The position numbers and the translations under genes are program-made. A DNA stretch of 64,000 nt from Octopus sinensis (taxonomy: Eukaryota): NCBI RefSeq assembly GCF_006345805.1, contig NC_043001.1:123876001-123940000 (forward strand). Direction: 5' to 3'. Below the pieces are notes generated by a model. The model searched no databases. It was not told the origin of the DNA and was given only the letters and a program-made list of their open reading frames with translations. Shown in pieces: positions 2,081-57,748 of the stretch (position 1 is the stretch's first letter; the number at the start of each line of letters is the position of its first letter).

Positions 2081-2311
2081 TATTTCTTTATTACTCACAG
2101 GGGATAAACAAAGAGGAGACAATCAAGGACAGACAAACGGATTAAGTAGTTTACATTGACCCAGTGCGTAACTGGTACTCTTAATTTATCGACCCCGAAA
2201 GGGTGAAAGGTAAGTCGACCTCGCGGAATTTGAACTCAGAACGTAACGGCAGACGAAATACGGCTACGCATTTCGCCCGGCGTTCTAACGTTTCTGCCAG
2301 CTCGCCGCCTT
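2081..2311 (-). mobile_element. tRNA-derived SINE family B, full length, 17-bp TSD
   Basis: Head AAGGCGGCGAGCTGGCAGAAACG, B-box-like GAGTTCAAATTCC, tail AATAAAGAAATA; TSD AATGGCTCTATAATATT at 2064-2080 and 2312-2328. Confidence 0.9.
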
Positions 2312-3167: not shown

Positions 3168-3399
3168 TATTTCTTTATTACTCACAGGGGGATAAACAAA
3201 GAGGAGACAATCAAGGACAGACAAACGGATTAAGTAGTTTACATTGACCCAGTGCGTAACTGGTACTTAATTTATCGACCCCGAAAGGGTGAAAGGTAAA
3301 GTCGACCTCGGCGGAATTTGAACTCAGAACGTAACGGCAGACGAAATACGGCTACGCATTTCGCCCGGCGTTCTAACGTTTCTGCCAGCTCGCCGCCTT
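3168..3399 (-). mobile_element. SINE family B (second copy within the gap-flanking duplication)
   Basis: Same element and same TSD as 2081-2311. Confidence 0.9.
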
Positions 3400-6025: not shown

Positions 6026-9000
6026 TGCCTAGTATTTTAGAATATTGAGAGAAGATGACGTTAGCAATTCAAAATTTCACAAAGTAAGTAAGAAAAAAAA
6101 AAAAGAAAATTATAATCCTCGGTAACTCTAGTCCAACTTTCTGAAATTTTCTTTACAAATCGATAATATTATAACGATTTTCTTTGTATGAAAAATGACT
6201 TTTGAGCAAGGATTTTGCGATTTAAAAGAACTAGGTTGATAACTCGACTTATCTTTCCTTCTGATAATAACCTTACTTAGAATGTATCGCAGGTTTTTTT
6301 ACATTGCAGATCAGATGCAATTCAGCTAACAAGCATGCATATTTGAAAATGTTTTGAATATTTATGGGCCAGGAGAATGAAATATGTGCTGGGGCCTATC
6401 TCATCTTTTTGAACATTAATTGACAAAAATCTAATTTCGTGAATAATAAAACGTTTCTGACAAAGTACTTGCTTTGAATAGCAAAGTGAGCAATAATGTA
6501 ACGCAATGTCTCTGCAATTCTTTGCGTTACATTTTATAGATTTATTGCAAGGTGGACAGAACATCAAAACAAGCGCTTTTACAGTGGTTCCTTGATTAAC
6601 GGCAATTATAACAAACACACAGGTAACTTTGTTTTTATAGTTTTATCTAAAGAACTCCAAGATCTTGTATTACATGGTACTGTTTCACCTTGGATTTCTA
6701 AAAACATAAAATATATACATTTCCAGTTACCAGGGTACGAAGTGTTACATAATTTTCCACGACGGAACAATAAAATAAGATAAAATAAATAAAAAAGAAA
6801 AAGAAAAAATAGAAATAAGTAAATAAATAAATAAATAAATAATAAATAAATTATTGTTGCTGTTATACGTGTGAAAAAGAATGCCTTTTCTAAAGATTTA
6901 TCAAAAAGTAGCGACAAAAGATGGAACGGAAAGAGAAAGAGAAAAGGGAGAAAGAGAGAAGGGGAGAGGTAGAAGAAAGCTAGAGACAGACAGAGAGAAG
7001 GAGAAAAAAGAGAAAGGGTTAAAGAGAGAAAGAAAGAGGGAGAAATGAGACAAACCCACAGAAGCGGAGGAGAGCGGTTGATGGTAGTGAGTCATTCAAG
7101 TTATGTATGATCGATGTAGTTTGGTGAATGCTGTAGAAATAGTGAGAGAAACGGTATAGAAATAAGGATTCTGCTGAATGCCGAATCTTCAGTAGATTTA
7201 AATTATTAATTTAATAAATGTGGCTATTCAACAACAGATCAAAGACAATAAATTGAGTAGAAATACCACATTGCTTTATGGAACTTCTTGTATCTTAAGT
7301 ACGACCAATATTTCGCCCTCAGTATTGAATAATAAAAATAGACGGTCAATTAGTAGAATTGTTAGATGCCAGACAAATGTCTCGTAGTAATTGCTTCGGC
7401 GCCTAATGTTCTGAGGTCAAATCCCGTCGAGGTCACACATAAGTCTTTCATCCCATTGTAGCTGTCTCAATATATAAGTCCTCTACTGAAGCGGATTCTT
7501 ATAACTCGCAGTTTCGGTTTCGTTTACGTTACATTCTAAGAAGCGCGTGCAGATGATGCATAATATCTCCTGTAGTGTTGTCAATGGTGAAGAATTAAAA
7601 TCTGGCAACCTCTTCTCCTCCATGATATTACAATACAAGAACTCTGTAAAGATGCGACTAATCGCGACCGCCTTTGACGGACTGACTGGTTGTATAGCAT
7701 TTGAATGGAACGGTTAGTTGATATTCTTATTCGGAAGTCTGATATATACCGTTAATCACTTCATTTTTATTCCCTTTCTGTTTTTATATAATCAAAAAAG
7801 GGGCTTCCCGAAACATAAGCTTATATGGTCGGTTTCCTGGATTCTGTGCTGTATGTATTCCTTACTGGACGGGACACCGGTCCGTCGCAGGATTACTCAG
7901 GTTTTCCAGCTGAGTGGACTGGAGCAAGGTGAAATAAAGCGTTTTGCTCAATAACTCAATGAATCGCCCTGTCCATGAATACCTGAATCAAAATCTGTTG
8001 AACATGAGTGTAACACGCTAATCACAAAAGCACGCGTACCACGTCTTTATAGAATACACACACACAAAAATACTTGACCCTCTCTGCACTCACACACACA
8101 AGCACACATACACACAGATGGATTCGGGTCAAGATTTTCGTTTATGAGTGTTTGGTTGTTCAATCAGCTAACCTATCCGGCTTGACTTGTAGGCAGCTAA
8201 GTAATTAAAAGACTGTACATTCTCAGGCAAAATAAGCGCGATCGTCGACTTAGATTCACTTACAAGATATGGATCACACAGAGACTATATAGAATATGGA
8301 TTATCGATTCAGCCAATCAACAGATTCGAAACTAGAACATAAATTAATGTGTAGCGAACTACCGAGCCATTCGGCCATACTGCGCTTATGCACACACACA
8401 GACACACAGACATACACACACACGTATACGCACATACACACACATACGCACACACATTCACAAAGACATTTACTTACATGCATACGCATACGCATACACA
8501 TACACACAATGCACAAATATGTGTATGTATCTATGGGTGTATATGTGTGTGTCGCTGCATTTTGTTTGCATCTTTATATATAAATATAGTTTACCCACAA
8601 AATATTACCAAACACGTTTGAAGCTCTTGCCTCAGTTTCCAAATCCTGTAGATTTGTTGAATTTTGTAGTGACTTAATTTGAACAATATATAAAACCTTT
8701 TGAACCTATTGTGCGTGAGCTATCAAAGAAGAAATAAAAAAGGAAACGTCTTGATATATTATACAGAATTTTAACCTTACATGTACGAAGTTTAACCTTA
8801 CATGTACGAATTCAATTGTCACTAGGTTCGTTTGCTGAACAAAGAGAATTTGATGAACTGGCTTAGATGCACACAATGGAACGTATATCCTTCGTGGGCC
8901 ACAGGCAACATAACCCACCCAAGGTGAAGCTGGGTACTAAACTTGATAACCTCACTACTTAAACCGAGTACTACATTTTATGACTCCACTGCTTATTTTC

Positions 9001-10084: not shown

Positions 10085-10316
10085 TATTTCTTTATTACCC
10101 ACAAGGGGCTAAACATAGAGGGGACAAACAAGGACAGACGAAGGGATTAAATCGATTACATCGACCCCAGTGCGTTAGTGGTACTTAATTTATCGACCCT
10201 GAAAGGATAAAAGGCAAAGTCGACCTGGGCGGAATTTGAACTCACGACGTAACGGCAGACGAAATACCGCTAAGCATTTCGCCCGACGTGCTAACGTTTC
10301 TGCCAGCTCGCCGCCA
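10085..10316 (-). mobile_element. SINE family B, full length, 13-bp TSD
   Basis: Matches family B; TSD AATGATGGATGCA at 10069-10081 and 10317-10329. Confidence 0.9.
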
Positions 10317-10964
10317 AATGATGGATGCAGTAGTCCTGCTCTTAAATCTGTCGTACGCCCATTTTATACCACTGCTGGAATTCACCAATACGATGGCGTC
10401 AAGTCATCTAACACTTCCATAAGTAGTTCTTAATTTTCGAGTGGTACTTCTACATGATGCTCGATCTACTAAGAATAGCAACCAAATACACTCAATTAGT
10501 GTAAAAATACAAAAGAGACATTGTGTAACATACTCCTAGATAGAACTGTCTGAAATATAGGCAGGATGATTACAAATGTAATGCTTTTGTTCAGTCAGAG
10601 CTCATCTGGTGATACGCAGCAACAAAAGCAATTGTTTTTCTAGTAGCGGATCATCATCCTGCTGGAATCAACGAATGATAAGTGTCTTGTAACTGTTTAT
10701 CTCCTTTAAATCCTTCCTCACGTTTCAACACAAACACACACACACGAGCATGAAGTTCATGCTTGCCCTTTACTCCATCAGTCATACATGCATAGTGTTG
10801 CTTCCACATGCGCCTAAACATAAGACTCCACTAACAATCCACTCGCACACATTATATGTCGCCATTATTTGCAGCAATATATTCTATTCACTCACTCAGT
10901 CATACAATCTAGCACATGCCTCTATTATCCACTTCTTTCCTCTTTCTCTTTCGGCCATGACCGA

Positions 10965-11952
10965 CAGTCGAGAACCGTTCACCTACACTATTTCCTCTCT
11001 TTCACTAGGAAGAGTACTGTTCACCTCCACTATTTAATTTCCTCCACTAGAAACAGTACAGCTCACATTTACTATATACTTTTTTTCACTAGAAAGAGTA
11101 CTGTTCACCTCCACTATTTACTCCTCTCCACTAGAAGGAGCACCATCCACCTACACTATTCACTCTCCTTAACGAGAAAGAGTACCGTTCATCTCCACTA
11201 TTTACTTTCCTCCACTAGAAAGAGTACCACTTACCTCCACTATTCCTGCTCCTTCAAAAGGAAGAGTATCGTTCACCTTCACTCACCTCCACTAGGAAGA
11301 GGACCGTTCGTTTCCACTGTGCACTCTCCTCCACTAGAAAGAGTACAGTTCAACTCCACTATTTGCTCCTATCCACTAGAAGGAGTACCGTTTACCACCA
11401 CTATTCAATCCGCTCCGCCGAGAAGAGTACCGTTCACCTCCAGTATTTACTCTCCTCCACTAGAAAGAGAACCGTTCCCCTCCGCAATTCATTCTGCTTC
11501 ACTAGAAAGGCTACATTGCCTCTTCACTATTTACTCTCCTTCACTAGAAAGAGTACTGTTCATCTCCACTATTCACTCTCCTTCACTAGAAAGAGTACGG
11601 TTTACCTTCACTATTCACTCTCCTTCACAAGAAAGAGTATCGTTAACCTCCACTATTCCCGCTCGTCTATGTAAGAGTACCGTTCACCTCCACTATTCAC
11701 TCTCCTTCCCTAGAAAGAGTACCGTTTACCTCCATTATTCACTCTCTTCCATTAGAAAGAGTACTGCACACCTCCATTAGAAAGAGAACCATTCATGTCT
11801 ACTATACACTCTCCTCCACTAGAAAGAGTACCGTTCAACCCCACTATTCACATTCCTTTACTAGAAGTAACAGTACCGTTCGCCTCCTCTATTCACTCTC
11901 CTCCACTAGAAAGAGTATCGTTCGCCTCCACAATTCACTCTCCTCCACTGAA
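10965..11952. repeat. 42-bp minisatellite, about 23 diverged units
   Basis: Consensus CCACTAGAAAGAGTACCGTTCACCTCCACTATTCACTCTCCT; produces the 303-aa repetitive ORF 10869-11780. Confidence 0.95.
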
Positions 11953-20709: not shown

Positions 20710-21030
20710 CTTTTCTCTCTTTTACTTGTTTCAGTCATCTGACTGTGGCCATGCTGGAGCACCGCTTTTTAGTCGAGCAAATCGACACCAGGACTTATTC
20801 TTTGTAAGCCTAGTACTTATTCTATCGGACTCTCTTTTGCCGAACCGCTAAGTTACGGCGACGTAAAAACACCAACATCGGTTGTCAAGCGATGTTTGGG
20901 GGACAAACACAGACGCACAAATATATACACAAGGCTTTGATCAGCCCGAAGCTATAGTAGAAGACACTTGCCCAAGGTGAAACGCAGTGGGACTGAAGCC
21001 GGAACCATGTGGTTGCTAAGCAAGCTACTT
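20710..21030 (-). mobile_element. SINE family A body, interrupted by the Tx1 element
   Basis: Family A sequence up to AGCAAGCTACTT; the head resumes at 26475. Confidence 0.88.
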
Positions 21031-21258
21031 TACTTCATATAATTTGCCATTTAGGCATTTACAAAGAGGGGACAAACAAGGACAGACAAATATAAAGAGT
21101 GAAGTAGCTTAACACAGTCACAATTTTCGAATGAAATTACGGATAAGATTATAAACAATGAATTTTACGAAGGCAATGTTTAAAAATATTAATGATCATG
21201 TCGAAGGACGGACACCCAGCCATCCGGGTAGAACCTTTACTTTCTGATCCGGTCACAC

Positions 21259-24200
21259 TTACCTGGTGCCAAACATACCCATCTTGTATGCCACAGGCTT
21301 CCATCTTTTCACAAACATATCTCGTGACAGACACCTCTTCTCCAGCCTGATTTTGCCACTGAGGTGGTAACTAAAAAAGTTAATCAACCCCTGGCCGGAG
21401 ACAAAGGTGCCTGTCACTATACCTTTCGTACGCGTCTTCCATACTGTTTCTTTCAGTATGGCTACTACACAGAAAAAACAAGCCTTTCTTTCCCTGTTAA
21501 GGAAAGGGGGCGGCACAATCTCGATGATAGACTCAGCCGATAGCTGTACTCTTCCCATCACTGACAACAGTTGTTCAACAAAAGCTATCAGTCCCCATAA
21601 CTCCGGACATTCCACGAATGCGTGCAAGACGGTCTCCCTATCCTGCTCACATCGCGGGCATGTCGGCGAGACGGCACTACCGTGCCTTGACAGCTTGTCG
21701 CGAACAGGTAAAGCCGCACGGAAACACTGCCAGGCCAGGGATTTCTGGTAATTATCCAGATACCCCGCCCGAACGTCCTCCGGAACAGGTTGACCAACTG
21801 ATTTTCATCGTAGCCCAGGGTCTCCCCCAAGGCGTCTTCGGACTTAATCTCCACTAACCCGCTGTAGAAATCCGTGGTGGAACTCCTGTTGCCGGCGTTG
21901 CCCACCCGAGATAGTAGCTGGAGCGCCTGACGGCACTCCAAATGCCATTCACTCAGTTTAGGTCTCCGCTTGATCCATGCACCGATGTCCGTTAGGGATG
22001 TTAACTGGGGAAGGTAGAACCGGACGTGCGGCGACCACACCTGCTCTCCATCCAGGTAAAGCCAGAGGTGCCTCAACCTTAACGCGAGTTTTCGCATCCT
22101 CAGCCAAGGCATCCCTAGCCCACCCTTTAGCGGTTTCTGGCAGCAGACAGAGCGCTTTACAAGTGGCTTTCCTCCTTTCCACAAAAATCGGAAAAGGATT
22201 CTCTCCAACTTGTTCAGCCACAAATCGGGGCAAGGCACCACGGTCAGACGGTAGGTGATTACTGATGCTATAAACATCTGCACCACCTCCGCCTTCCCTA
22301 GCAGGGATAACGCCCGCCCAGACCAGGTCTGGGTTAGAGCGGTCACCTTGTTGGCCACCTCACTCCAATTTTTCTCAATCTGGAGGTCTGGCCCGAACCA
22401 GACTCCGAGCAGCTTAACAGGACCTTCCGTCCAACGTCCTACGACGTTATTGGACTGCATCGGCTTGCCCCTCCAGGTGCCGAGTTGCAAACCGACCGAC
22501 TTGTCCTTGTTAACCTTTGCTCCTGCCACCGCCTCGTAGCTTTTGATGGCCTCTTCCACCACTGGAAGCTGGCCTTCGTCTGCCACGATGATGGAGGTGT
22601 CATCCGCATACGCCGTAGCTCCTCTTCCACACCATAGATCATGCGGCGCGCCCCCTAGTGCCTCCAACTTCCGCAGCAAAGGCTCAAGAGCCAATACGTA
22701 TAGGAGCGAGGACAGGGGACACCCTTGACGAACTGAACGCTCGATCCTGAACGGCTTCGAAAAGGAACCGTTCACCTTGACTACAGACTCGATGTCGCTA
22801 TACAAAGCAGCGATCCAACCTCGAAAGGTCGGGCCTAGGCCAGCCTCTCCGAGGTCCGCCGCCAGGTACCGATGGTCGACCCTATCAAATGCTTTGGACT
22901 GGTCTAAATGTACCAGTGCTCCCCCTGCGCCAGAAAGCTTCCCCACCCTCTCTAAGGAGTAGCGTATAAGGTGGAGATTGTCGTGGATCGTTCTGCCGGG
23001 GATAGCGCACGTTTGCGCTTCCCCGACAAGTTTGTCCACGACCCGCGCCAACCTTTTTGCTAGCACCTTGGCCAGAATCTTTAACTCTGTGTTTAACAGA
23101 GTTATGGGCCTGAAGTTCCCTATCTCGTCCCCCTTGTTCGGGTCCTTCCTGATCAACGTCACCGCCCCCCGGCTCGCAGACTTGGGAATTCTCCCATTCT
23201 GCTGCCAGTTGGCGTAGACGCTAGCCAGCAGGTGCCCGAACAAGTCTGGCATACTTCTATAAAATTCATAGGGCAGACCATCGAGACCCGGCGACTTCTC
23301 CCCGGGGCACTTGCCCAACACCTCGATTACTTCCTCGGCTGTGATTGGCCCCTCACAGCACTCAGCCTCTCGTGTCGAGAGGCGCGGGCCACCAGACAGG
23401 AAGTCCCTAAGGGCCTCACCATGATCCAGCGTCCCGCACCTCCCGAACAACTCGGCGAAGTGCTTGTGAAGTGCATCACGCATCTCGTCCCGGTTCTTGA
23501 TCGTGCATCCGTTTTCATCAACAAGAGACCCAATTGTGGCATCGTTTCCACGCTGTGTTTCTATCGTACGGGCCCATCCGGCAACATTAATTGCCTCACG
23601 GCCCAATGCTCGTACTTTAGCCCGGACTCTACATCCCTCATGTTTGGTTTTGAGGTGACGGTCTAATGCCGTTCTCGCCGCTAAAATGTGAGATGCAGAG
23701 CCCAACCTCAACGCCTCCTCTAAGTTCTTAACTAGTTGCCCTTCTATTCTAGCCCTATCTAGTCTTAGTTGTTTACTAAATCTAATGGACTCGAATCGAA
23801 TGGCTCTTTTGAGTGTGAACCACCACCGGTTATTAACCACGGCTCCGTCTAACGCCCTCTGCACTAACACCTTAATCCGGCTACGGTATGCCTCGCGTGT
23901 CAAAATAGACTTGTTCAGCTTCCAGTAGCCGGTTCCTATCTTAAGTGTGCTATCTATGTCCAGTCTACACGTGACCATTCTATGGTCAGTATAGGGCACC
24001 TGGACGAGCTGTGGACAACTAAAACTAGACTTATCTCTAGTTCTTATCACTATCCTGTCTAGATAAGACTTGAACCTTCCGTCGCCACTCATCCAGGTCC
24101 ACTCTGGGACGTTCGGATGGTCAAGTCTGTAACGATCTGCTAAATGAAACCGCTTAAGCAGATCCACGAGACGTGAGTTCACTTTCCGATAGATCGAGCC

Positions 24201-24659
24201 AACGCTATCGATGTGTACGTCAACGATAGCATTAAAGTCCCCTAATACCACTAAAGTCTTCGACGTCACGAGAAAGCCCTCTAGGCGCCGATAAAAATCA
24301 GTTTGGAAACCTCTAGCACAAGGTGCATAGAGTCCGATCAACCTGAAGGCCTTACTGCTGTATGTCACATCAAGGACGACCAGCCCACCTTCTGGGTCTA
24401 CATAGACTGTACTTGTCTGTAGAGCCAAGTCTTTACGGATCAGTACCACTACGCCCCCTCGCCCTCCGGTCTGGCCAGGAGACATGATTTTCTCGTAGCC
24501 ATTCAGGAGAGGCGAGAAGGTTTGTAGGCTGTCCAGCTTGGTCTCTGTAGCAACCATCACATGTATATCATGTGATCTGAGGTCGTCGAGGAAACAAGCC
24601 TGCTTCCACTTCGAACTCAGACCACGCACATTTAAACAACCAAGGTTAAGCGAAGCCAT
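21259..24659 (-). CDS. Tx1 ORF2: APE endonuclease-reverse transcriptase, one frameshift near 21762-21770
   Basis: LNVRGL, ATET, LGDFNA, SYLDR and TDH (APE); DQSKAFDRV, SVRQGCPLS and YADD (RT); in the shifted frame CPRCEQDRETVLHAFVEC, continuing into track ORF 21259-21627. Confidence 0.93.
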
Positions 24660-24676
24660 TACAAAAAGTAAAAGTT

Positions 24677-26105
24677 CTACTTACATTTCGTTGGAGAAGT
24701 GGGGGCCGACCTCACCACACGTTTGTGGGCCCCTTCTTTCTCCTCTTTCTTCAGATAGTCCGGTAAGTTCGCGATATGCCGGATGGCGTTTGGGTGTCTG
24801 TCTTTTAATTGTTTGAACGTTGTTTCCGCAATCCACGCGTGTCTATTTCGATCTTTGTATTTGTTGTACAGTCTTGCTGACTGATGCTGAACCACAATAT
24901 CGTTTATGTATTTGTCTTGTGTGTCGAATTCAATTAATATGAGTTCATTTTCTTTTTTGTCTTCTTTTTCTGGGCCAGTTGAGCGGGATTTTTTTTATCC
25001 GTGTCTGTGGTGTGTCTTTGTTTTTATTATTTTTTGTAGGGGATGTGGACGGGGATGCTGCACGAATTCTTTTATGAACTGGTGTAAATCCCCCCTCTGA
25101 TACCTCCATGGTATCGTCTGGAGTAGCAATAGTTTATTCGGTAGGCGCCGCAGTTTTTAGGGGGGTGGGAGGTTTTAATAGTGTAGGGGTTTGTGAGTGC
25201 GAGGGCTGGGTTTTTTCTTCAGTCTGTTTTGGGGTTGGCACCGTAACAGCAGGAATGGGATTTTTTGTTTTTGTAGGGGTAGGTGTGTTTGCAAGGGTAG
25301 GGACTTTTTTATTATCTGAGGGGCCTGGTGTCTGCGGTTTCTTTTGCTTGTCTGGACAGTCTACACGAATGTGGCCCTTTTTGCCGCAGGCGTAACAGGT
25401 GGGTTTTCGGCCTTCGACCTGTACCCTGAGGGCTACGTTCTCGCCCACGAGCACCCTCTCAGGAAGGAGCTGCAGGTCCTCCGCTGTTCCTTGAATTAAT
25501 ATATTAATGTTACGCCCGAGCCAAAATAGAGGGGTAGAGCATGTTACTTGAAGTATTTTTATTTTGTCCGCCCTTTTATATAACAGGGCGGCCACTACCT
25601 CTACCGGATCTACTTCCGGCGGGGCTTCTACAATCCTGACCCGGGACGACCTGCGTCCCCTATAGCTTGGGAAAAGTACCACCTCCTTGGTTTTTAGGGG
25701 GTTCAAAGAATGCCCGCGGGCCATTTCTTCCCCCGAGAAGCGGACATCCACAGTGCCATATGCCCGTCCCCTGGCGACGTACACGATGTCCTTCCAAATC
25801 GGGGACAGGCATTTCTCGATGGTGCTTTTTTCAAAGTGTTTGAAACTTCTGCTTTGTGGACAGAAAGTTTTAAACACTACAGTCCGCTTCTCGGTCTCCA
25901 CGATACTGGCGGAGGGTGATATTTTAACATCACCACCCTCCTCTTGCATTCTTTTAAATAGCTCGACGAGCTGGTTGACATCGATGTCAATGTTCTCGGT
26001 AGCCACTGCGGCTACCGCAGAAAATCTTTTAACATTGCTCTCCTCAAGAGCACTACTTTCGTGGATAATTTCAACAGGCATTATTCTGTTGAAATTAGAC
26101 AACAC
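24677..26105 (-). CDS. Tx1 ORF1 (gag-like), with premature TAA at 25134-25136 and a frameshift in the T8 run at 24989-24996
   Basis: VEGRKPTCYACGKKGHIRVDC knuckle and Pro/Thr-rich linker; reading continues past the stop (GGFTPVHKRIR) and joins track ORF 24677-24895; 17 nt to the ORF2 ATG. Confidence 0.85.
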
Positions 26106-26474
26106 AAAAATTACGAATATTGGTTTCCCACAAAACTGGGAAACCTATAGAAAGTTTTACTTCCAAAGTAGTTCAAAAAAGCAGTTCAAAAATTCCAATT
26201 CCCACCCCCATTCGGGGGAGGGGCACGAAAATAGTCTGGCAGGACTATATATAGTCACGTAAATAAAAAGCCACAATGGCTAACAGTTCAACGGTAAGAA
26301 ATTATTCTATTATTTCCCGGTAAAACCGGAGAACAAGACAGTTCAGCGACGTTTAAAGGCAAATTTTCAGTAGTAGGAATTCAACAATTAACAACACAGC
26401 AAAACTCTTACCGGGAAGAAAACGCGTCCAAACCGTAGTACGGTAAGCAAAGTCACTCTTCTGTCAGTGAGGTT

Positions 26475-26512
26475 AGCAAGCTACTTACCACACAGCCACT
26501 CATGCACCTATG
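26475..26512 (-). mobile_element. 5' head of the split family A SINE
   Basis: AGCAAGCTACTTACCACACAGCCACTCATGCACCTAT matches the family A head (compare 53518-53553). Confidence 0.85.
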
Positions 26513-29573: not shown

Positions 29574-32284
29574 AATTAACCCAATAAATATCTGATTCAT
29601 AATATTTGTTCTCATGTTTGAGTGGTGGTGGAGGCGATAATAATTCTCTCTATGAATGCAGACAGACGTAGAAAGAGAGAGGTGATATGGAAGAAAGAGT
29701 GAAGGCGGAGGGGGAAAGATAGTAGACGTTGTCAAAGGACGTTATAAAGAGAATGTGAAAGGAAGGGAGGAAAGAGAGAGACACGGAGAAAGACATGCAG
29801 ATAAGAGAATGAGCGTAGACTTGTCAAAGTGTGCGTTTTATACCCTAGTAATGACACCTTTTAAGATAGGGATTTCTAAATTAGCTCAATCACATCCTCA
29901 CCTCATTATAAATAACCTTGCCCGCACTTGTGCCTCGGAGGCGACCTTCCTAGGTGCAATCCCATGGTCATGTATGACAGAAGGCGGTCTTTATACTTTA
30001 CTCCACACATCCTACCTAATCTTCCTGATCCATGTCTGCAGATATATCCATGTCTGCTTTTCAGATATGACACGCATTGAACTCAAATCTGTGTATGTGT
30101 GTATGTTTGTATGTGTGTGTGTATGTGTGTGTGTGTGAGAGAGAGAGAGAGAAAGAGAGTGTGTGTGTATTTGTATGTGTCGGTGTATGTGTATGAGTAA
30201 ATGCATGTGTAGAATATGGTACTCTTGTAAATAAAGTATAGAACTGTCTCTTGTGTGAATGAAGACGGTTTGAAATTCTCTAGTGTCGCTCGACCCCACA
30301 AAGTCTGTGTCCTTTTTAAGGTTATCTTTACATATCTTTCATCGAATTTATACCCAGCATCGATTTTACTACGATGTTTCGTATTAGATTAGGCGTCTCT
30401 GATTCGAAACGTCGTAACAAAATCTGTGCTGGCTATAATTGCCAAAGAAGATCTGTTGAGAGAACCTGAATAAGTGATGCAAAGTGCACTGCTAACACAG
30501 TAGAATACAGTATTATAAAAACATTTAATATACTTATAAAAACGTTTAATATGCTCTGTAGTACATTATAGTTGCATAAAGAAATATAGTCTCCCTACAG
30601 ATCCTTAATACTGTTTCCTATTCTACGTTCCCCTTTGACATGATTTCAAGAACGGTCACGCTATGTTGTGTCGCTCTTTCGGCTAGAAATAGCTATTTTA
30701 CCTCAAATCAGTCAATAGCATTTTTTTTTTAAAAAGGACAAGTTGTAAAATATCGTTCAGGGTTTTCTGTTCATAGAGAAGTTAAAGGATGATTGTTGCT
30801 AGAGTGCCTTTGATAATGGTTAAATAGATTTTAGTTGCTGGATTTGGGTTGCTTTCGGGACAAGTAAGAAAACATCTATCAACAACTGCAAAAATATCTA
30901 CATGTCATCAAACGCGAGAATTGTATTCCTGATGTTCCAGCTGTGACCATCCATTCTTATTCATATATATCTATATTACACAATGTGTCTTTCTTCTCTT
31001 AATACGAAAGTTTAGGAATTCAGGGAGATCTGACTACTATTTCTGCAATAAAGGCAGCCTCGTTGATTCATTTCTGATCTGGTTGTTATATCTGTAATTT
31101 TGAACTGAACTCTGAAAGTTTATTGCTGTATTTCAGCCCCAGATCAGCTTTAAACTAGCAGACCTATTGTCAAAGGTATTCTTCTTGTGACTGTTACGTA
31201 CCTTTTGTATATTTGAGATTAAACTGCAAACTTCTAATCGCTGTTTTATTAAAAAGAATTGTTGCTAGTGATTCAGACAGATTTGGCTACTACCCCTACC
31301 TGGTCGACGGAAATGTTATCTCCTTTTATGGGAGGTAACTCGAGGCAGTAGCCGGTCAATGTATTTGTTAATCATCAAAATTCTATGAATGTAAATCTGT
31401 CTCCAGTCAATATATTCCTTAAGTTGAAGCTTATCTTGATCTGCAAAACATTTAGCCCACTGAAATACATGACTTCTGCGTGGCATAGTTTATTCTCTTT
31501 ATTTGTAGGTATGTATCTTCGATTTGGGAATCGAAGACAGATATCTAACGATCATAAATACTCTCCAACAAACCACTCATTATGCTACGCGAATTGTCAT
31601 TGACAGCACACAAATCTATTGTTCTTTATTCCGTAATTAGATGATGTTCATTTGACCGACAGTAATCGTAGGAGTAACAATTTTAAAATGCAGTACATAA
31701 AGCAAAGAGACAAAAATAATTAACAGCCAGGTATGTGAATTAATACGGCTGTGATCGCCAATGGACAGAAAGCAGTTTCTCTGTCTAGGAAACAGTTGCC
31801 TTGGTAACTATGCTTCTACTGATATAAGCGATCGATTCAACAATATTTCAAAATCATAGCGACTTGGTATTTCTATGACTACGTAAACAAGACAGTGCAA
31901 CATTATGTAGTCCGTATAATGTTCTGACCTATTCTATACACATGAGGTAAGCACACGTATGTGTATGTGTTGGTGCATGTGTTTCTGCGAGCTTGCATGA
32001 GTATGTGTGTATGTGTGTGTGTGTGTGTGTGTGCCAATAGATGTAGGTATACGTCTGTGCATATATACATATATGCATACATACAAAGATACATACATAC
32101 AAACACACGCATATGCAAACATACATACATACATACATGCAGAAGAAAATATATACACTTAAGTGGATGTGCTTACATGTATTAATCTATGTGTGTCTTT
32201 TGTCTTTCTGTCTGTCATTTGTCTGTCTGTCTGTGTGTAAATATATATATATATATATATATGTATGTATTCATATATATATAT

Positions 32285-32550
32285 ATCACGTGATCACGTG
32301 ACCGACCAGACCATCAGATGCACTTCGCATTGTTTTAGCCTTCGAATGACGTCACCCCGCTGGTTAGACGAGCAGGGCAACAGAAGAAAGAGTGAAGGAA
32401 AGAGTGGTGAAAGAGTACAGCAGGGATCACCACCCGCTGCCGGAGCCTCGTGGAACTTTAAGGTGCTTTCGCTCAATAAACACTCACAACGCCCGGTCTG
32501 GGAATCGAAACCGCGAGTCCGCTGCCCTAACCAGTGGGCCATTGCACCTC

Positions 32551-32553
<3 letters not shown>
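32285..32553 (-). mobile_element. SINE family C head with an alternative tail (C')
   Basis: Head matches the 12751-13132 element; ends in GGTCGGTCACGTGATCACGTGA. Confidence 0.88.
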
Positions 32554-32609
<56 letters not shown>

Positions 32610-32815
32610 CCAATAGATGTAGGTATACGTCTGTGCATATATACATATATGCATACATACAAAGATACATACATACAAACACACGCATATGCAAACATAC
32701 ATACATACATACATGCAGAAGAAAATATATACACTTAAGTGGATGTGCTTACATGTATTAATCTATGTGTGTCTTTTGTCTTTCTGTCTGTCATTTGTCT
32801 GTCTGTCTGTGTGTA

Positions 32816-32848
<33 letters not shown>

Positions 32849-32862
32849 TCATATATATATAT

Positions 32863-33128
32863 ATCACGTGATCACGTGACCGACCAGACCATCAGATGCA
32901 CTTCGCATTGTTTTAGCCTTCGAATGACGTCACCCCGCTGGTTAGACGAGCAGGGCAACAGAAGAAAGAGTGAAGGAAAGAGTGGTGAAAGAGTACAGCA
33001 GGGATCACCACCCGCTGCCGGAGCCTCGTGGAACTTTAAGGTGCTTTCGCTCAATAAACACTCACAACGCCCGGTCTGGGAATCGAAACCGCGAGTCCGC
33101 TGCCCTAACCAGTGGGCCATTGCACCTC

Positions 33129-33131
<3 letters not shown>
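32863..33131 (-). mobile_element. SINE C' (duplicated copy)
   Basis: No differences seen from 32285-32553. Confidence 0.88.
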
Positions 33132-33201
<70 letters not shown>

Positions 33202-33239
33202 TCAACAATTCCTATTCATAAAGCAAAGGCAACCTTGAT

Positions 33240-38870: not shown

Positions 38871-40077
38871 GAGGGGCGTTCAATAAGTAATGCCTCTGAC
38901 CCACTTGCCGTTGATTGATCTAGCTGAGATTTTGCATGTGTAATTATTTATATCTCTATAGATTAAGTGGCAAATTACAGCTCCGAACTAATAGTGGTTT
39001 CTGATTTACATGTGTTTGAAATGAGTCAAGTGGGAAATGGAGCCTGTTGAGTGTCGAGAAGTGATCCGGTTTTTGTATTTGAAATGACGCACACCACAGG
39101 AGACTTTTGATGAAATGAAAATAACTTATGGTGATGATGCCCCATCATATGACCTTGTAAAACGCTGGCATCGTGAATTCAAACATGGTCGGAACTCTGT
39201 GGAAATAGCTCCCAGATCTGGTCGCACCCCTTCTGCCATTGATGAGGCATATGTCCGTCAAGTTGAGGCTGCCATTTTGGAAGATGGACGCATAACTATT
39301 CGCCAAATAGCCCATGAGGTCAAGATTAGTACCGGGTCTGTGGAAACTATCATTCATGAAGCAAGACGCGTCGAGTGCTCGAGGATGAATTTAGGGATGT
39401 GCCAAGAAGATGAGTCAAAATTTTTCAAAAGACTGATTACACAGGATGAGACCTGGGTCCTTCACCATGATCCAGAGACCAAAGCCCAGTCAATGCAGTG
39501 GAAGCACCATGCCTCACTTCCTCCAAAGAAGGCAAGAGTGCAGCCCTCCGCTGGCAAGGTCATGCTCACAGTCTTCTGGGACCAGGACGGAGTAGTGATG
39601 ACAGATTTCCTGGCAAAGGGTACCACAATTACAGGAGCCTATCATGCTTCACTGTTGAGGAAATTAAGAGAAGCTATCAAAACCAAGAGGCGGGGCAAGA
39701 TCAGCAAAGGCATCCTCCTCCTGCAGGACAACGCTCCGGTCCACAACTCGCGTGTCGCCAGATCAGAACACTTCCCCCATCCCCCTACTCTCCTGACATT
39801 GCACCCTCAAATTTTCACCTCTTCCCAGCCATGAAGTTGTTTTTGAAAGGAAAGCGTTTCCCAGATGATGCAGCCTTGGTTTCTGAAGTCACGTCGTGGC
39901 TGGAGGACCAAGCTGGGGTCTTCTATGAAAACGGTCTCCAGAGCTGTATCAAACGATGGGAGCAATGCGTAACTCTGGGTTGTTCCTATGCTGAAAAGGA
40001 CTAATACCTGTGCCAAGTTTCGTTGCTCTACTGCTATGGGAAGTGGGTCAGGGGCATTATTTATTGAACGCCCCTCG
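38870..40077 (+). mobile_element. mariner (DD34D) element, defective copy 1
   Basis: TIRs CGAGGGGCGTTCAATAA, TA TSD; ITQDETW, QDNAP and YSPD motifs; early TGA and two internal deletions. Confidence 0.95.
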
Positions 40078-44370: not shown

Positions 44371-45665
44371 CGAGGGGCGTTCAATAAGTAATGCCTCTGA
44401 CCCACTTGCCGTTGATTGATCTAGCTGAGATTTTGCATGTGTAATTATTTATATCTCTATAGATTAAGTGGCAATTACGCTCCGAACTAATAGTGGTTTC
44501 TGATTTACATGTATTTGAAATGAGTCAAGTGGGAAATGGAGCCTGTTGAGTGTCGAGAAGTGATCCGGTTTTTGTATTTGAAATGACGCACACCACAGGA
44601 GACTTTTGATGAAATGAAAATAACTTATGGTGATGATGCCCCATCATATGACCTTGTAAAACGCTGGCATCGTGAATTCAAACATGGTCGGAACTCTGTG
44701 GAAATAGCTCCCAGATCTGGTCGCACCCCTTCTACCATTGATGAGGCATCTGTCCGTCAAGTTGAGGCTGCCATTTTGGAAGATGGACGCATAACTATTC
44801 GCCAAATAGCCCATGAGGTCAAGATTAGTACCGGGTCTGTGGAAACTATCATTCATGACCATTTGCATATGCAAAAGGTGTCTGCCAGAGGGATTCCCAG
44901 GTTGCTCACACTTTTTCCTGAAGCAAGAACGCGTCGAGTGCTCGAGGATGAATTTAGGGATGTGCCAAGAAGATGAGTCAAAATTTTTCAAAAGACAAAA
45001 TGATTACACAGGATGAGACCTGGGTCCTTCACCATGATCCAGAGACCAAAGCCCAGTCAATGCAGTGGAAGCACCATGACTTACCTCCTCCAAAGAAGGC
45101 AAGGGTGCAGCCCTCCGCTGGCAAGGTCATACTCACAGTCTTCTGGGACCAGGACGGAGTAGTGATGACAGATTTCCTGGCAAAGGGTACCACAATTACA
45201 GGAGCCTATCATGCTTCACTTTTGAGGAAATTAAGAGAAGCTATCAAAACCAAGAGGCGGGGCAAGATCAGCAAAGGCATCCTCCTCCTGCAGGACAACG
45301 CTCCGGTCCACAACTCGCGTGTCGCCAGATCAGAAGCACAGGCGTGCGGCTATGAACACTTCCCCCATCCCCCTACTCTCCTGACATTGCACACTCTGAT
45401 TTTCACCTCTTCCCAGCCATGAAGTTGTTTTTGAAAGGAAAGCGTTTCCCAGACGATGCAGCCTTGATTTCTGAAGTAACGTCGTGGTTGGAGGATCAAG
45501 CTGGGGTCTTCTATGAAAACGGTCTCCAGAGCTGTATCAAACGATGGGAGAAATGCGTAACTCTGGGTTGTTCCTATGCTGAAAAAGACTAATACCTGTG
45601 CCAAGTTTCGTTGCTCTACTTCTATGGGAAGTGGGTCAGGGGCATTACTTATTGAACGCCCCTCG
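44371..45665 (+). mobile_element. mariner (DD34D) element, defective copy 2, 1295 bp
   Basis: Same TIRs, TA TSD at 44369-44370 and 45666-45667; transposase broken by a stop and frameshifts. Confidence 0.95.
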
Positions 45666-56838: not shown

Positions 56839-57072
56839 GAAGGCGGCGAGCTGGCAGAATCGTTAGCACGCCGGGCGAAATGCGTAGCCGTATTTCGTCT
56901 GCCGCTACGGTCTGAGTTCAAATTCCGCCGAGGTGGACTTTGCCTTTCATCCTTTCGGGATCGATAAATTAAGTACCAGTTACGCACTGGGGTCGATATA
57001 ATCGACTTAATCCCTTTGTCTGTCCTTGTTTGTCCCCTCTATGTTTAGCTCCTTGTGGGCAATAAAGAAATA
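56839..57072 (+). mobile_element. SINE family B, full length
   Basis: GAAGGCGGCGAGCTGGCAG...AATAAAGAAATA. Confidence 0.93.
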
Positions 57073-57275
57073 AGAATCGTTAGCACAGTGGTCAAAATGT
57101 TTAGCTGCATTTCGTCCATCTTTACGTTCTGAGTTCGAATTCTGCCGAGTTCAACTTTACCTTACACGCTTTCAGGATCGCTAAAATAAGCATCAGTTGA
57201 GCACGGGTCGATGTAATCGACTTACCCACTCTCCCGAAATTACTGGCCCTGTGCCAAAATTTGAAACCGATATTT
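57073..57275 (+). mobile_element. SINE B-related subfamily copy with a different tail
   Basis: GAATCGTTAGCAC...GAGTTCGAATTCTGCC...GTGCCAAAATTTGAAACC. Confidence 0.7.
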
Positions 57276-57332: not shown

Positions 57333-57748
57333 TATTTCTTTACTACCCACAATGGGCTAAACACAGAGGGGACAAACAAGGACAGACAAACGGATTAAGT
57401 CGATTACATCGACCTCAGTGCGTAACAGGTACTTAATTTATCGACCCCGAAAGGATGAAAGGCAAAGTCGACCTCGGCGGAAATTGAACTCAGAACGTAA
57501 CGGCAGACGAAATACCAATTTCTTTATTACCCACAAAGGGCTAAACACAGAGAGGACAAACAAGGACAGACATAGGTATTAAGTCGATTACATCGACCCC
57601 AGTGCGTAACTGGCACTTAATTTATCGACCCCGAAGGATGAAAGGCAAAGCCGACCTCGGCGGAATTTGAACTCAGAACGTAACGGCAGACGAAATACGG
57701 CTACTCATTTCGCCCGGCGTGCTAATTTTTCTGCCAGCTCGCCGCCTT
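57333..57748 (-). mobile_element. Tandem dimer of SINE family B (full copy 57517-57748 plus 5'-truncated copy 57333-57516)
   Basis: Two family B tails in tandem; flanks TTGCCAAATAAAT (57313-57325) and TTGCCAAAGAAAT (57749-57761). Confidence 0.9.

Follow-up and report, generated by a model that had tools for sequence, protein, structure and literature searches.

Mammalian L1 elements recognize the RNA that they copy in a relaxed manner, and a particular tail is not needed. Stringent pairs, in which a SINE carries the 3' tail of its partner LINE, have been described in eel (UnaL2/UnaSINE1, L2 clade), tortoise (CR1/PolIII-SINE) and tobacco (TS/RTE) (Ohshima and Okada; PMC3747384). Tail-sharing SINEs are rare in the L1 clade (3 SINEs among >800 L1-clade LINEs; PMC3747384), and tails of the stringent type were reported there for a maize/sorghum L1 lineage with ZmSINE-type SINEs and for the Chlamydomonas pair L1-1_CR/SINEX-3_CR (PMC3472496, PMC3747384). 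The link between crocodilian Tx1-Mar and SINEU is of another kind and consists of target preference and of U1/U2 heads in common, SINEU having poly(A) tails (Kojima 2015, PMC4494074). Many Tx1 elements have a specific target: Tx1L inserts in Tx1D of Xenopus, Keno in U2 snRNA genes and Kibi/Koshi in microsatellites (cited in PMC4494074). SINEs belong to the largest repeat classes in Octopus genomes; in Octopus vulgaris they make up 11.6% of the assembly and almost all active families are unclassified (PMC13282606); the LINE that copies Octopus SINEs is unnamed in the papers that we searched. Here we analysed a stretch of 64,000 nucleotides from Octopus sinensis (contig NC_043001.1, positions 123,876,001 to 123,940,000), referred to as the window. 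That a 3' tail is shared by an L1/Tx1-type LINE lineage, represented in the window by one nearly intact copy, and by the abundant SINE family that we call SINE B is well supported by the sequences compared. This common structured tail makes the LINE lineage a candidate engine for Octopus SINEs and provides a testable recognition element.

The features of the locus are collected in Table 1. ORF2 of the window LINE ended with a stop codon at 21259-21261 and was open save for one frameshift in a G run around 21763-21770, located by comparison with the related sequence P0001. Pfam detected the domains Exo_endo_phos, RVT_1 and zf-CCHC, and the layout found was that of Tx1-type elements, with an APE endonuclease, a reverse transcriptase and a C-terminal zinc finger in ORF2 and a CCHC knuckle in ORF1. 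Residues 6-870 of ORF2 aligned with human L1 ORF2p at an E value of 3e-68, compared with about 1e-20 for R2 proteins, and relatives of the LINE carried zf-RVT (PF13966). Judged by these sequence features (the ORF2 match to human L1 ORF2p, the zf-RVT domain of the relatives and the ORF1 CCHC knuckle), the window LINE belongs to the L1 superclade. Since L1-Tx1 is the sole L1-like group in the Octopus annotation (PMC13282606), membership in Tx1 is likely, by elimination rather than by phylogeny. An exact-protein look-up with the window ORF2 returned no record, and the public protein collection held no close copies of it, the best being 60% identical. The entry 'MAG: zinc-binding domain-containing protein [Herbaspirillum sp.]' (P0019) was 55% identical to the C-terminus of the LINE ORF2 over 98% of the query; its most likely source is animal DNA that was binned with a bacterial genome. 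Several contigs from JGI and ENA metagenomes (P0015-P0018, P0021, P0022) proved to be LINEs of the same kind. Neither a second copy of the LINE nor another LINE-like ORF was found among the larger ORFs of the window, which held mariner-type transposase remnants only. These DNA transposon remnants (Transposase_1, PF01359, E about 1e-23) lay in the ORFs at 39115-39834 and 44973-45422.

Table 1. Positions in the window of the LINE, of the SINE A copy around it and of the SINE B copies
Feature	Position	Strand	Basis or remark
Full-length L1/Tx1-type LINE (5'UTR, ORF1, ORF2, 3'UTR)	21031-26474	-	ORFs, Pfam, ends set by the target site duplication (TSD)
ORF1, about 315 aa from ATG at 26081, CCHC zinc knuckle	25134-26081	-	ORFs, Pfam
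ORF2: APE endonuclease, reverse transcriptase, C-terminal CPRC...H...C zinc finger	21259-24659	-	ORFs, Pfam
LINE 3'UTR, 228 nt	21031-21258	-	Homologous along its whole length to the 3'UTRs of L080 and L081
26-nt pyrimidine-rich block TTTGTCTGTCCTTGTTTGTCCCCTCT	21065-21090	-	Same 26 letters in the SINE B consensus and in two SINE B copies
Hairpin UGCC-UAAAU-GGCA	21045-21057	-	Counterpart GCCC-CUUGU-GGGU in SINE B, GGCC-CUUGU-GGCU in Argonauta LINEs and SINEs
A-rich 3' terminus AATTATATGAAGTA, target copy AAGTAGCTTGCT directly after	21031-21044	-	Flank comparison
5' TSD copy AAGTAGCTTGCT, end of the SINE A head fragment	26475-26486	-	Flank comparison
3' TSD copy AAGTAGCTTGCT, start of the remaining SINE A	21019-21030	-	Flank comparison
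SINE A body and tail, split by the LINE; head at 26475-26512	20712-21030	-	Joined flanks restore an uninterrupted SINE A head
SINE B, full length, 96.5% identical to the working consensus, block at 57015-57040	56842-57072	+	Consensus alignment
SINE B, 5'-truncated at consensus position 49, block at 57365-57390, fused tail-to-head to the next copy	57333-57515	-	
SINE B, block with 2 mismatches at 57549-57574	57518-57746	-	
SINE B with 13-bp TSD TGCATCCATCATT	10085-10315	-	
SINE B with 17-bp TSD AATATTATAGAGCCATT	2081-2309	-	Same insertion event as 3168-3397
SINE B, duplicate of the 2081-2309 locus	3168-3397	-	

A reading of the window made from its letters only (below, the sequence-only reading) had claimed that the end of the LINE is identical to SINE B tails at 26 of 26 positions. 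The pattern AGAGGGGACAAACAAGGACAGACAAA was indeed present without mismatch at all three sites, 21065-21090 (+), 57365-57390 (+) and 57015-57040 (-); the LINE lies on the minus strand, and coordinates of the plus strand therefore give the reverse complement of the block, which reads TTTGTCTGTCCTTGTTTGTCCCCTCT on the sense strand of both the LINE and SINE B. Near-exact copies with 1-2 mismatches occurred at 2112, 3200, 10117 and 57549. This made 7 matches in the window, compared with 0.00 expected from 100 dinucleotide shuffles, and all of them except the one at 21065 fell inside SINE B copies. On the sense strand the LINE ends with …TTTGTCTGTCCTTGTTTGTCCCCTCT-TTGTAAA-TGCC-TAAAT-GGCA-AATTATATGAAGTA, and the tail of SINE B reads TTTGTCTGTCCTTGTTTGTCCCCTCT-ATGTTTA-GCCC-CTTGT-GGGT-AATAAAGAAATA. 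Local alignment of the two reached 29/30 positions (the block plus TGT) and went no further; the distal 34 nt were about 56% identical, which is weakly above shuffles (44/2000 scored equally well). Upstream of the block there was no homology between the UTR of the LINE and the body of SINE B (729/2000 shuffles scored equally well). In the 64-kb window a covariance model of the tail, built from 20 tails, picked out only the end of the LINE and the six copies of SINE B, and in 27 kb of Argonauta DNA it found about 25 tails, many of them outside the building set. At 32202-32251 and 32778-32827, 576 nt apart, this model gave two weak and identical matches (21 bits, E about 0.02), which adjoin two 157-aa ORFs of equal length at 32265-32738 and 32765-33238; the arrangement looks like a tandem duplication.

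The boundaries of the LINE were set by its insertion site. A perfect 12-bp target duplication, AAGTAGCTTGCT, flanks the element (a duplication of 16 bp, 2 of them mismatched, would place the 5' end at 26470 instead). On the minus strand, …GTGGCTGTGTGGTAAGTAGCTTGCT precedes the LINE and AAGTAGCTTGCTTAGCAACCACATGGTTCC… comes after it; these are the two halves of one SINE A copy, and the joined flanks gave a SINE A head collinear with the intact SINE A copies in the window. The terminal GAAGTA directly abuts the target duplication. Since it does so, and since the empty site is restored, the block, the hairpin and the end are the true 3' terminus of the inserted LINE. The module at 21031-21090 is therefore part of the LINE and not an adjoining SINE B fragment. 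The insertion is young, given the perfect duplication and the nearly intact ORFs. These observations bear on the explanation that the similarity at 21031-21090 is due to chance, or that a 5'-truncated fragment of SINE B type happens to lie there beside the LINE. The match past the block is weak, as such an origin would allow, and elements of the SINE B type do insert at other tail ends in the window. Against this, no match is expected by chance, the duplication of the LINE itself abuts GAAGTA and removal of the whole unit restores the empty site, two relatives of the LINE (L080 and L081, see below) show the same continuity from UTR to tail, and the distal tail of the LINE is unlike any SINE in the window. 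We consider this explanation very improbable. The SINE A copy also contains an internal segment, 20899-20925 (TGTGCGTCTGTGTTTGTCCCCC), that resembles the block (85% over 27 nt) and may be an old copy of the tail module that became internal to SINE A.

The hairpin described by the sequence-only reading, 8 nt 3' of the block and with stems that differ between the LINE (GCC/GGC) and the SINE (CCC/GGG), was present in the sequence as (T)GCC-TAAAT-GGC(A) in the LINE and (G)CCC-CTTGT-GGG(T) in SINE B. Its further description, 13-15 nt ending with GAA(G/A)TA, also agreed with our counts: from the 3-bp stem there were 15 nt to the end with GAAGTA in the LINE and 13 nt to the end with GAAATA in SINE B. 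The stems extend to 4 bp, with UGCC/GGCA in the window LINE, GCCC/GGGU in Octopus SINE B and GGCC/GGCU in the LINEs and SINEs of Argonauta. In a further relative, L084, the stem is GACC/GGUC with a 6-nt loop (one extra base), and its second pair is A-U once the loop is allowed for. When the 20 tails were folded together, RNAalifold predicted exactly the 4-bp stem and nothing else. Pairing was possible in 87.5% of the stem cells, compared with 10-46% when the 3' partner was slid by 1-3 columns. The second pair was found as G-C (13), C-G (4) and U-G (1), and the outer pair as G-U (12), G-C (3), A-U (1) and U-A (1). Covariation of the hairpin had been proposed as a check, and compensatory changes were detected: there were 6 cells with double changes, in 2/4 pairs, compared with 1.9 ± 1.1 in shuffles (0/500), counts that overstate the significance because the tails are related by descent. 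Folding of single sequences gave weak z-scores, from -1.4 to +0.15. The support for conservation of the hairpin by compensatory changes is thus real but modest, as the stem is short and the sequences are related. An extended 11-bp stem, pairing CUCU.UGU with A.AAGA, was compatible with the tails (84.6% paired) and showed no covariation, and we do not claim it.

The SINE B family is about 231 bp long and has 6 copies in the window, which are 92-96.5% identical to the working consensus; its canonical tail ends with …GTCCCCTCTATGTTTAGCCCCTTGTGGGTAATAAAGAAATA. The TSDs of 13 and 17 bp that had been assigned to the family were both recovered. The 17-bp duplication represents one event that was later copied, since the copies at 2081-2309 and 3168-3397 have identical flanks and the same TSD and lie about 1.09 kb apart, indicating a local duplication and not two insertions. 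The TSDs of 13 and 17 bp are compatible with an endonuclease-dependent partner. In the head of the SINE a B-box-like motif, GAGTTCAAATTCC, was seen by eye, and a tRNA was recognised neither by ARAGORN nor by Rfam; at E<=1 Rfam reported no family, known LINE 3' elements and tRNA included, for the LINE end and the SINE B cluster. Within this cluster, at 57333-57746 (-), a tail-to-head fusion joins a full SINE B to one that is truncated at position 49, and the pair as a whole is flanked by ATTTCTTTGGCAA / ATTTATTTGGCAA, which look like one TSD. A single insertion, during which template switching led from one SINE B RNA onto the tail of a second, would fit this arrangement. A different SINE, with another 3' part, occupies 57073-57224 and starts right after the last base of a SINE B tail (57072). 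With a head that resembles positions 15-168 of SINE B at 79%, it represents a second insertion at a SINE B tail end. Elsewhere in the window, at 10970-11776, there is a tandem array of 19 copies of a 42-nt unit (73% matches), which underlies a 303-aa ORF (10869-11780) with no Pfam match.

Relatives of the window LINE were sought with the C-terminus of ORF2 and then with a profile of this C-terminus, and fragments with 3' ends were kept. The 3' ends recovered came from contigs of sequencing runs (L080, L081 and L084, the last duplicated by L085) and from the genome of Argonauta hians, with one locus each for L082 and L083. Left out of the set were L001, whose contig stops 113 nt past the stop codon, and L086, L087/L088 and L089, which end before the tail. 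L080 and L081 were the nearest relatives with a 3' end (79% and 67% nucleotide identity to the window LINE in the ORF2 C-terminus). The tail module was present in 6/6 LINE 3' ends, those of the window LINE and of L080, L081, L082, L083 and L084, in a diverged form in the five relatives. The 3'UTRs of the window LINE, L080 and L081 aligned from the stop codon to the end, with a mean column identity of 71% (3 sequences), and a decayed block was found in L080 (22/27) and in L081 (22/29). The possibility that other copies of the family lack the block, and that the block of the window copy is a captured SINE fragment, did not hold, as the module lies inside a LINE bounded by its TSD and is present at the ends of all five relatives.

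The Argonauta elements extended the match to the terminus. The LINE L083 ends with …GTCCCCTCTATGTTTTTGCCCTTGTGGCTAATAAAAGAAATA, which matched the tail of Octopus SINE B at 45/54 positions up to the last base, with an alignment score of 59 compared with 21 for the best of 500 shuffles. The LINE L082 ends with …CTGTGTCGGCCCTTGTGGCTAATAAAGAAATCTAT, and SINE B-like elements in the flanks of the two Argonauta loci end with …CTGTGTTCGGCCCTTGTGGCTAATAGAGAAATCTAT. L082 and the Argonauta SINE tails agreed at 44/52 positions, including the species-specific GGCC/GGCT stem and the end …GAAATCTAT. The end of L084 was …CTATATTGGACCCTGTGTGGTCAATAAAAGAAAT. Another LINE clade with a better match to the SINE B tail was to count against the partnership; matches to the distal tail better than that of the window copy exist (L083, 45/54), and they belong to siblings of the same lineage. 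This tail comparison covered LINEs of the same lineage, with RTE, CR1 and Dong-R4 elements of the genome outside it. From the genome of the window itself, searches with the ORF2 C-terminus and with its profile retrieved no LINE that ends in the complete canonical tail of SINE B. Two distant relatives, L002 and L003 (about 40% amino acid identity), showed neither SINE B nor a match to the tail; L003 has a mariner-type Transposase_1 remnant beside its LINE. In L082, at 8020-8560, the first ~130 nt of the 3'UTR recur in a diverged form after about 280 nt of AT-rich DNA; this UTR is therefore 636 nt long, compared with about 220 nt in the other LINEs. The LINE-specific junction GTCCCCTCTTTGTAAATG gave 76 matches in metagenomes, many of them in contigs labelled human gut metagenome; all consisted of one common 21-mer with no other LINE sequence, and were discarded as chance matches.

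Taken together, we consider it probable that the tail module was inherited in the octopod LINE lineage and is held in common with SINE B, and that a sibling subfamily with the canonical tail drives SINE B. In this view, the last ~60 nt of the LINE constitute a 3'-terminal module composed of the 26-nt block, the 4-bp hairpin with its 5-nt loop and an A-rich GAARTA end. This module is inherited within the octopod L1/Tx1-type lineage and serves as the tail of SINE B and of the SINE B-like families of Argonauta. By analogy with the described stringent pairs, the ORF2 protein of the lineage may bind the module on RNA and begin target-primed reverse transcription there, and SINE RNAs that end in the module would then be copied in trans by this protein. 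We infer both the recognition of the module by the protein and the trans-mobilisation of SINE B from this analogy. The sequence-only reading had named 'this Tx1 family or a relative' as a possible driver of SINE B. Our results support the proposal for the lineage, and 'relative' is probably its correct half; the mobilisation itself is inferred.

The subfamily of the window LINE could itself be the driver of SINE B, if the block and a hairpin of the right shape suffice and the distal sequence is not needed. Within one genome, 26/26 positions agree between the SINE B consensus and a LINE that is nearly intact, the spacing to a hairpin of the same size is equal and the GAARTA ends are similar; the LINE is also young, as seen from its perfect TSD and its one frameshift. 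We nevertheless regard this as unlikely. The distal tail of the window LINE has diverged, whereas siblings match SINE B to the last base; the window LINE, L080 and L081 lie at one SINE A position, whereas SINE B with a readable TSD was never found in SINE A. In the one described Tx1/SINE case, moreover, the target preference is common to LINE and SINE (PMC4494074). Because the distal tail of the window copy is diverged and its sub-lineage sits at one SINE A site, the sequences make a sibling subfamily with the canonical distal tail the more likely driver.

Alternatively, the common tail could be a matter of history: SINE B or an ancestral SINE would have taken its tail from the LINE lineage, or template switching would have brought the tail of a SINE to the LINE, and SINE B would now be copied by another LINE clade or by relaxed recognition in which the tail is unneeded. 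LINEs of the L1 clade are mostly relaxed, and other LINE clades are active in Octopus (PMC13282606), both of which would suit such a history. It is less likely still than mobilisation by the window subfamily, as two octopod genera have kept the tail at the extreme 3' end of their LINEs as well as their SINEs, and a poly(A) tail, on which a relaxed L1 could act, is absent from the elements. The species-matched details and the compensated stem, too, are predicted by ongoing selection on both partners and not by a relic. Mobilisation by a sibling subfamily that has kept the canonical tail is the explanation that we prefer.

The position of the window LINE within SINE A was repeated in its nearest relatives. 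All 3/3 copies of the window's sub-lineage join SINE A immediately before AAG(T/A)AGCTTGCTT, in the same orientation, both junctions being visible in the window only. The window LINE ends with …GAAGTA followed by AAGTAGCTTGCTT; L080 ends with …GAAATA(AAG) followed by AAGAAGCTTGCTT, with SINE A at 1335-1369 of its contig, and L081 with …AAAGCA followed by AAGGAACTTGTTT, with SINE A at 1300-1391. As the window copy is young and L080 and L081 are decayed, at least two of the insertion events were independent. L082, L083 and L084 had no SINE A after the LINE end, and the SINE B copies were dispersed, with no copy that has a readable TSD in SINE A. The 3' end of the LINE (AAGTA) repeats the first bases of the SINE A target (AAGTAGC). 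We tentatively suggest, with somewhat more doubt than conviction, that the Tx1 sub-lineage of the window homes into the head of the abundant SINE A with a 3' end that mimics its target, and that SINEs of the SINE B type are driven throughout Octopoda by siblings that have kept the canonical tail. If the endonuclease of the window LINE is site-specific, the window subfamily cannot drive SINE B. If this suggestion is true, one LINE lineage feeds one SINE family and lands in another. No description of a SINE head as a dedicated LINE target was found in the papers searched, and such homing, if confirmed, would be an addition to the target specificities known for Tx1. With the known target-specific Tx1 elements the window LINE, L080 and L081 have in common that they abut a repeated target at one and the same nucleotide and in one orientation; unlike in the known cases, the target here would be a SINE head, and it is represented by n=3 copies, one of them with both junctions.

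No published octopod SINE/LINE tail pair came up in a literature search that used words and the sequence of the block, the repeat libraries Repbase and Dfam lying outside the scope of that search. Compared with Tx1-Mar/SINEU, the octopod elements are alike in that a Tx1-type LINE is proposed as the driver of a SINE and apparently inserts in another transposon at a preferred position. They differ in that the octopod link is a common 3' tail, the heads being unrelated, and in that SINE B does not have the apparent target of the LINE: it lies outside SINE A and ends with GAAATA rather than with poly(A). The resemblance to the stringent pairs is closer. The last ~60 nt of the SINE are homologous to the 3' end of the LINE up to the terminus, this tail is constant within the LINE family, a short terminal stem-loop carries compensatory changes, and the insertions are flanked by TSDs. 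In contrast to the stringent pairs, the octopod LINE belongs to the L1/Tx1 superclade and not to L2, CR1 or RTE, it has no clear terminal microsatellite (octopod ends are GAAATA(TA)n or GAAATCTAT), its stem is 4 bp long, and the pair is known from sequence alone. With the L1 lineages of maize/sorghum and Chlamydomonas the octopod elements share a conserved 3' hairpin that has compensatory mutations and is common to SINEs; the plant and algal cases end in poly(A), whereas the octopod elements have an animal host, no poly(A) and a Tx1-like ORF1 with a CCHC knuckle. The octopod pair is thus a known type of partnership in a clade where tail-sharing SINEs are rare, and it adds a candidate animal example to the few LINEs of the L1 superclade with stringent, tail-specific recognition.
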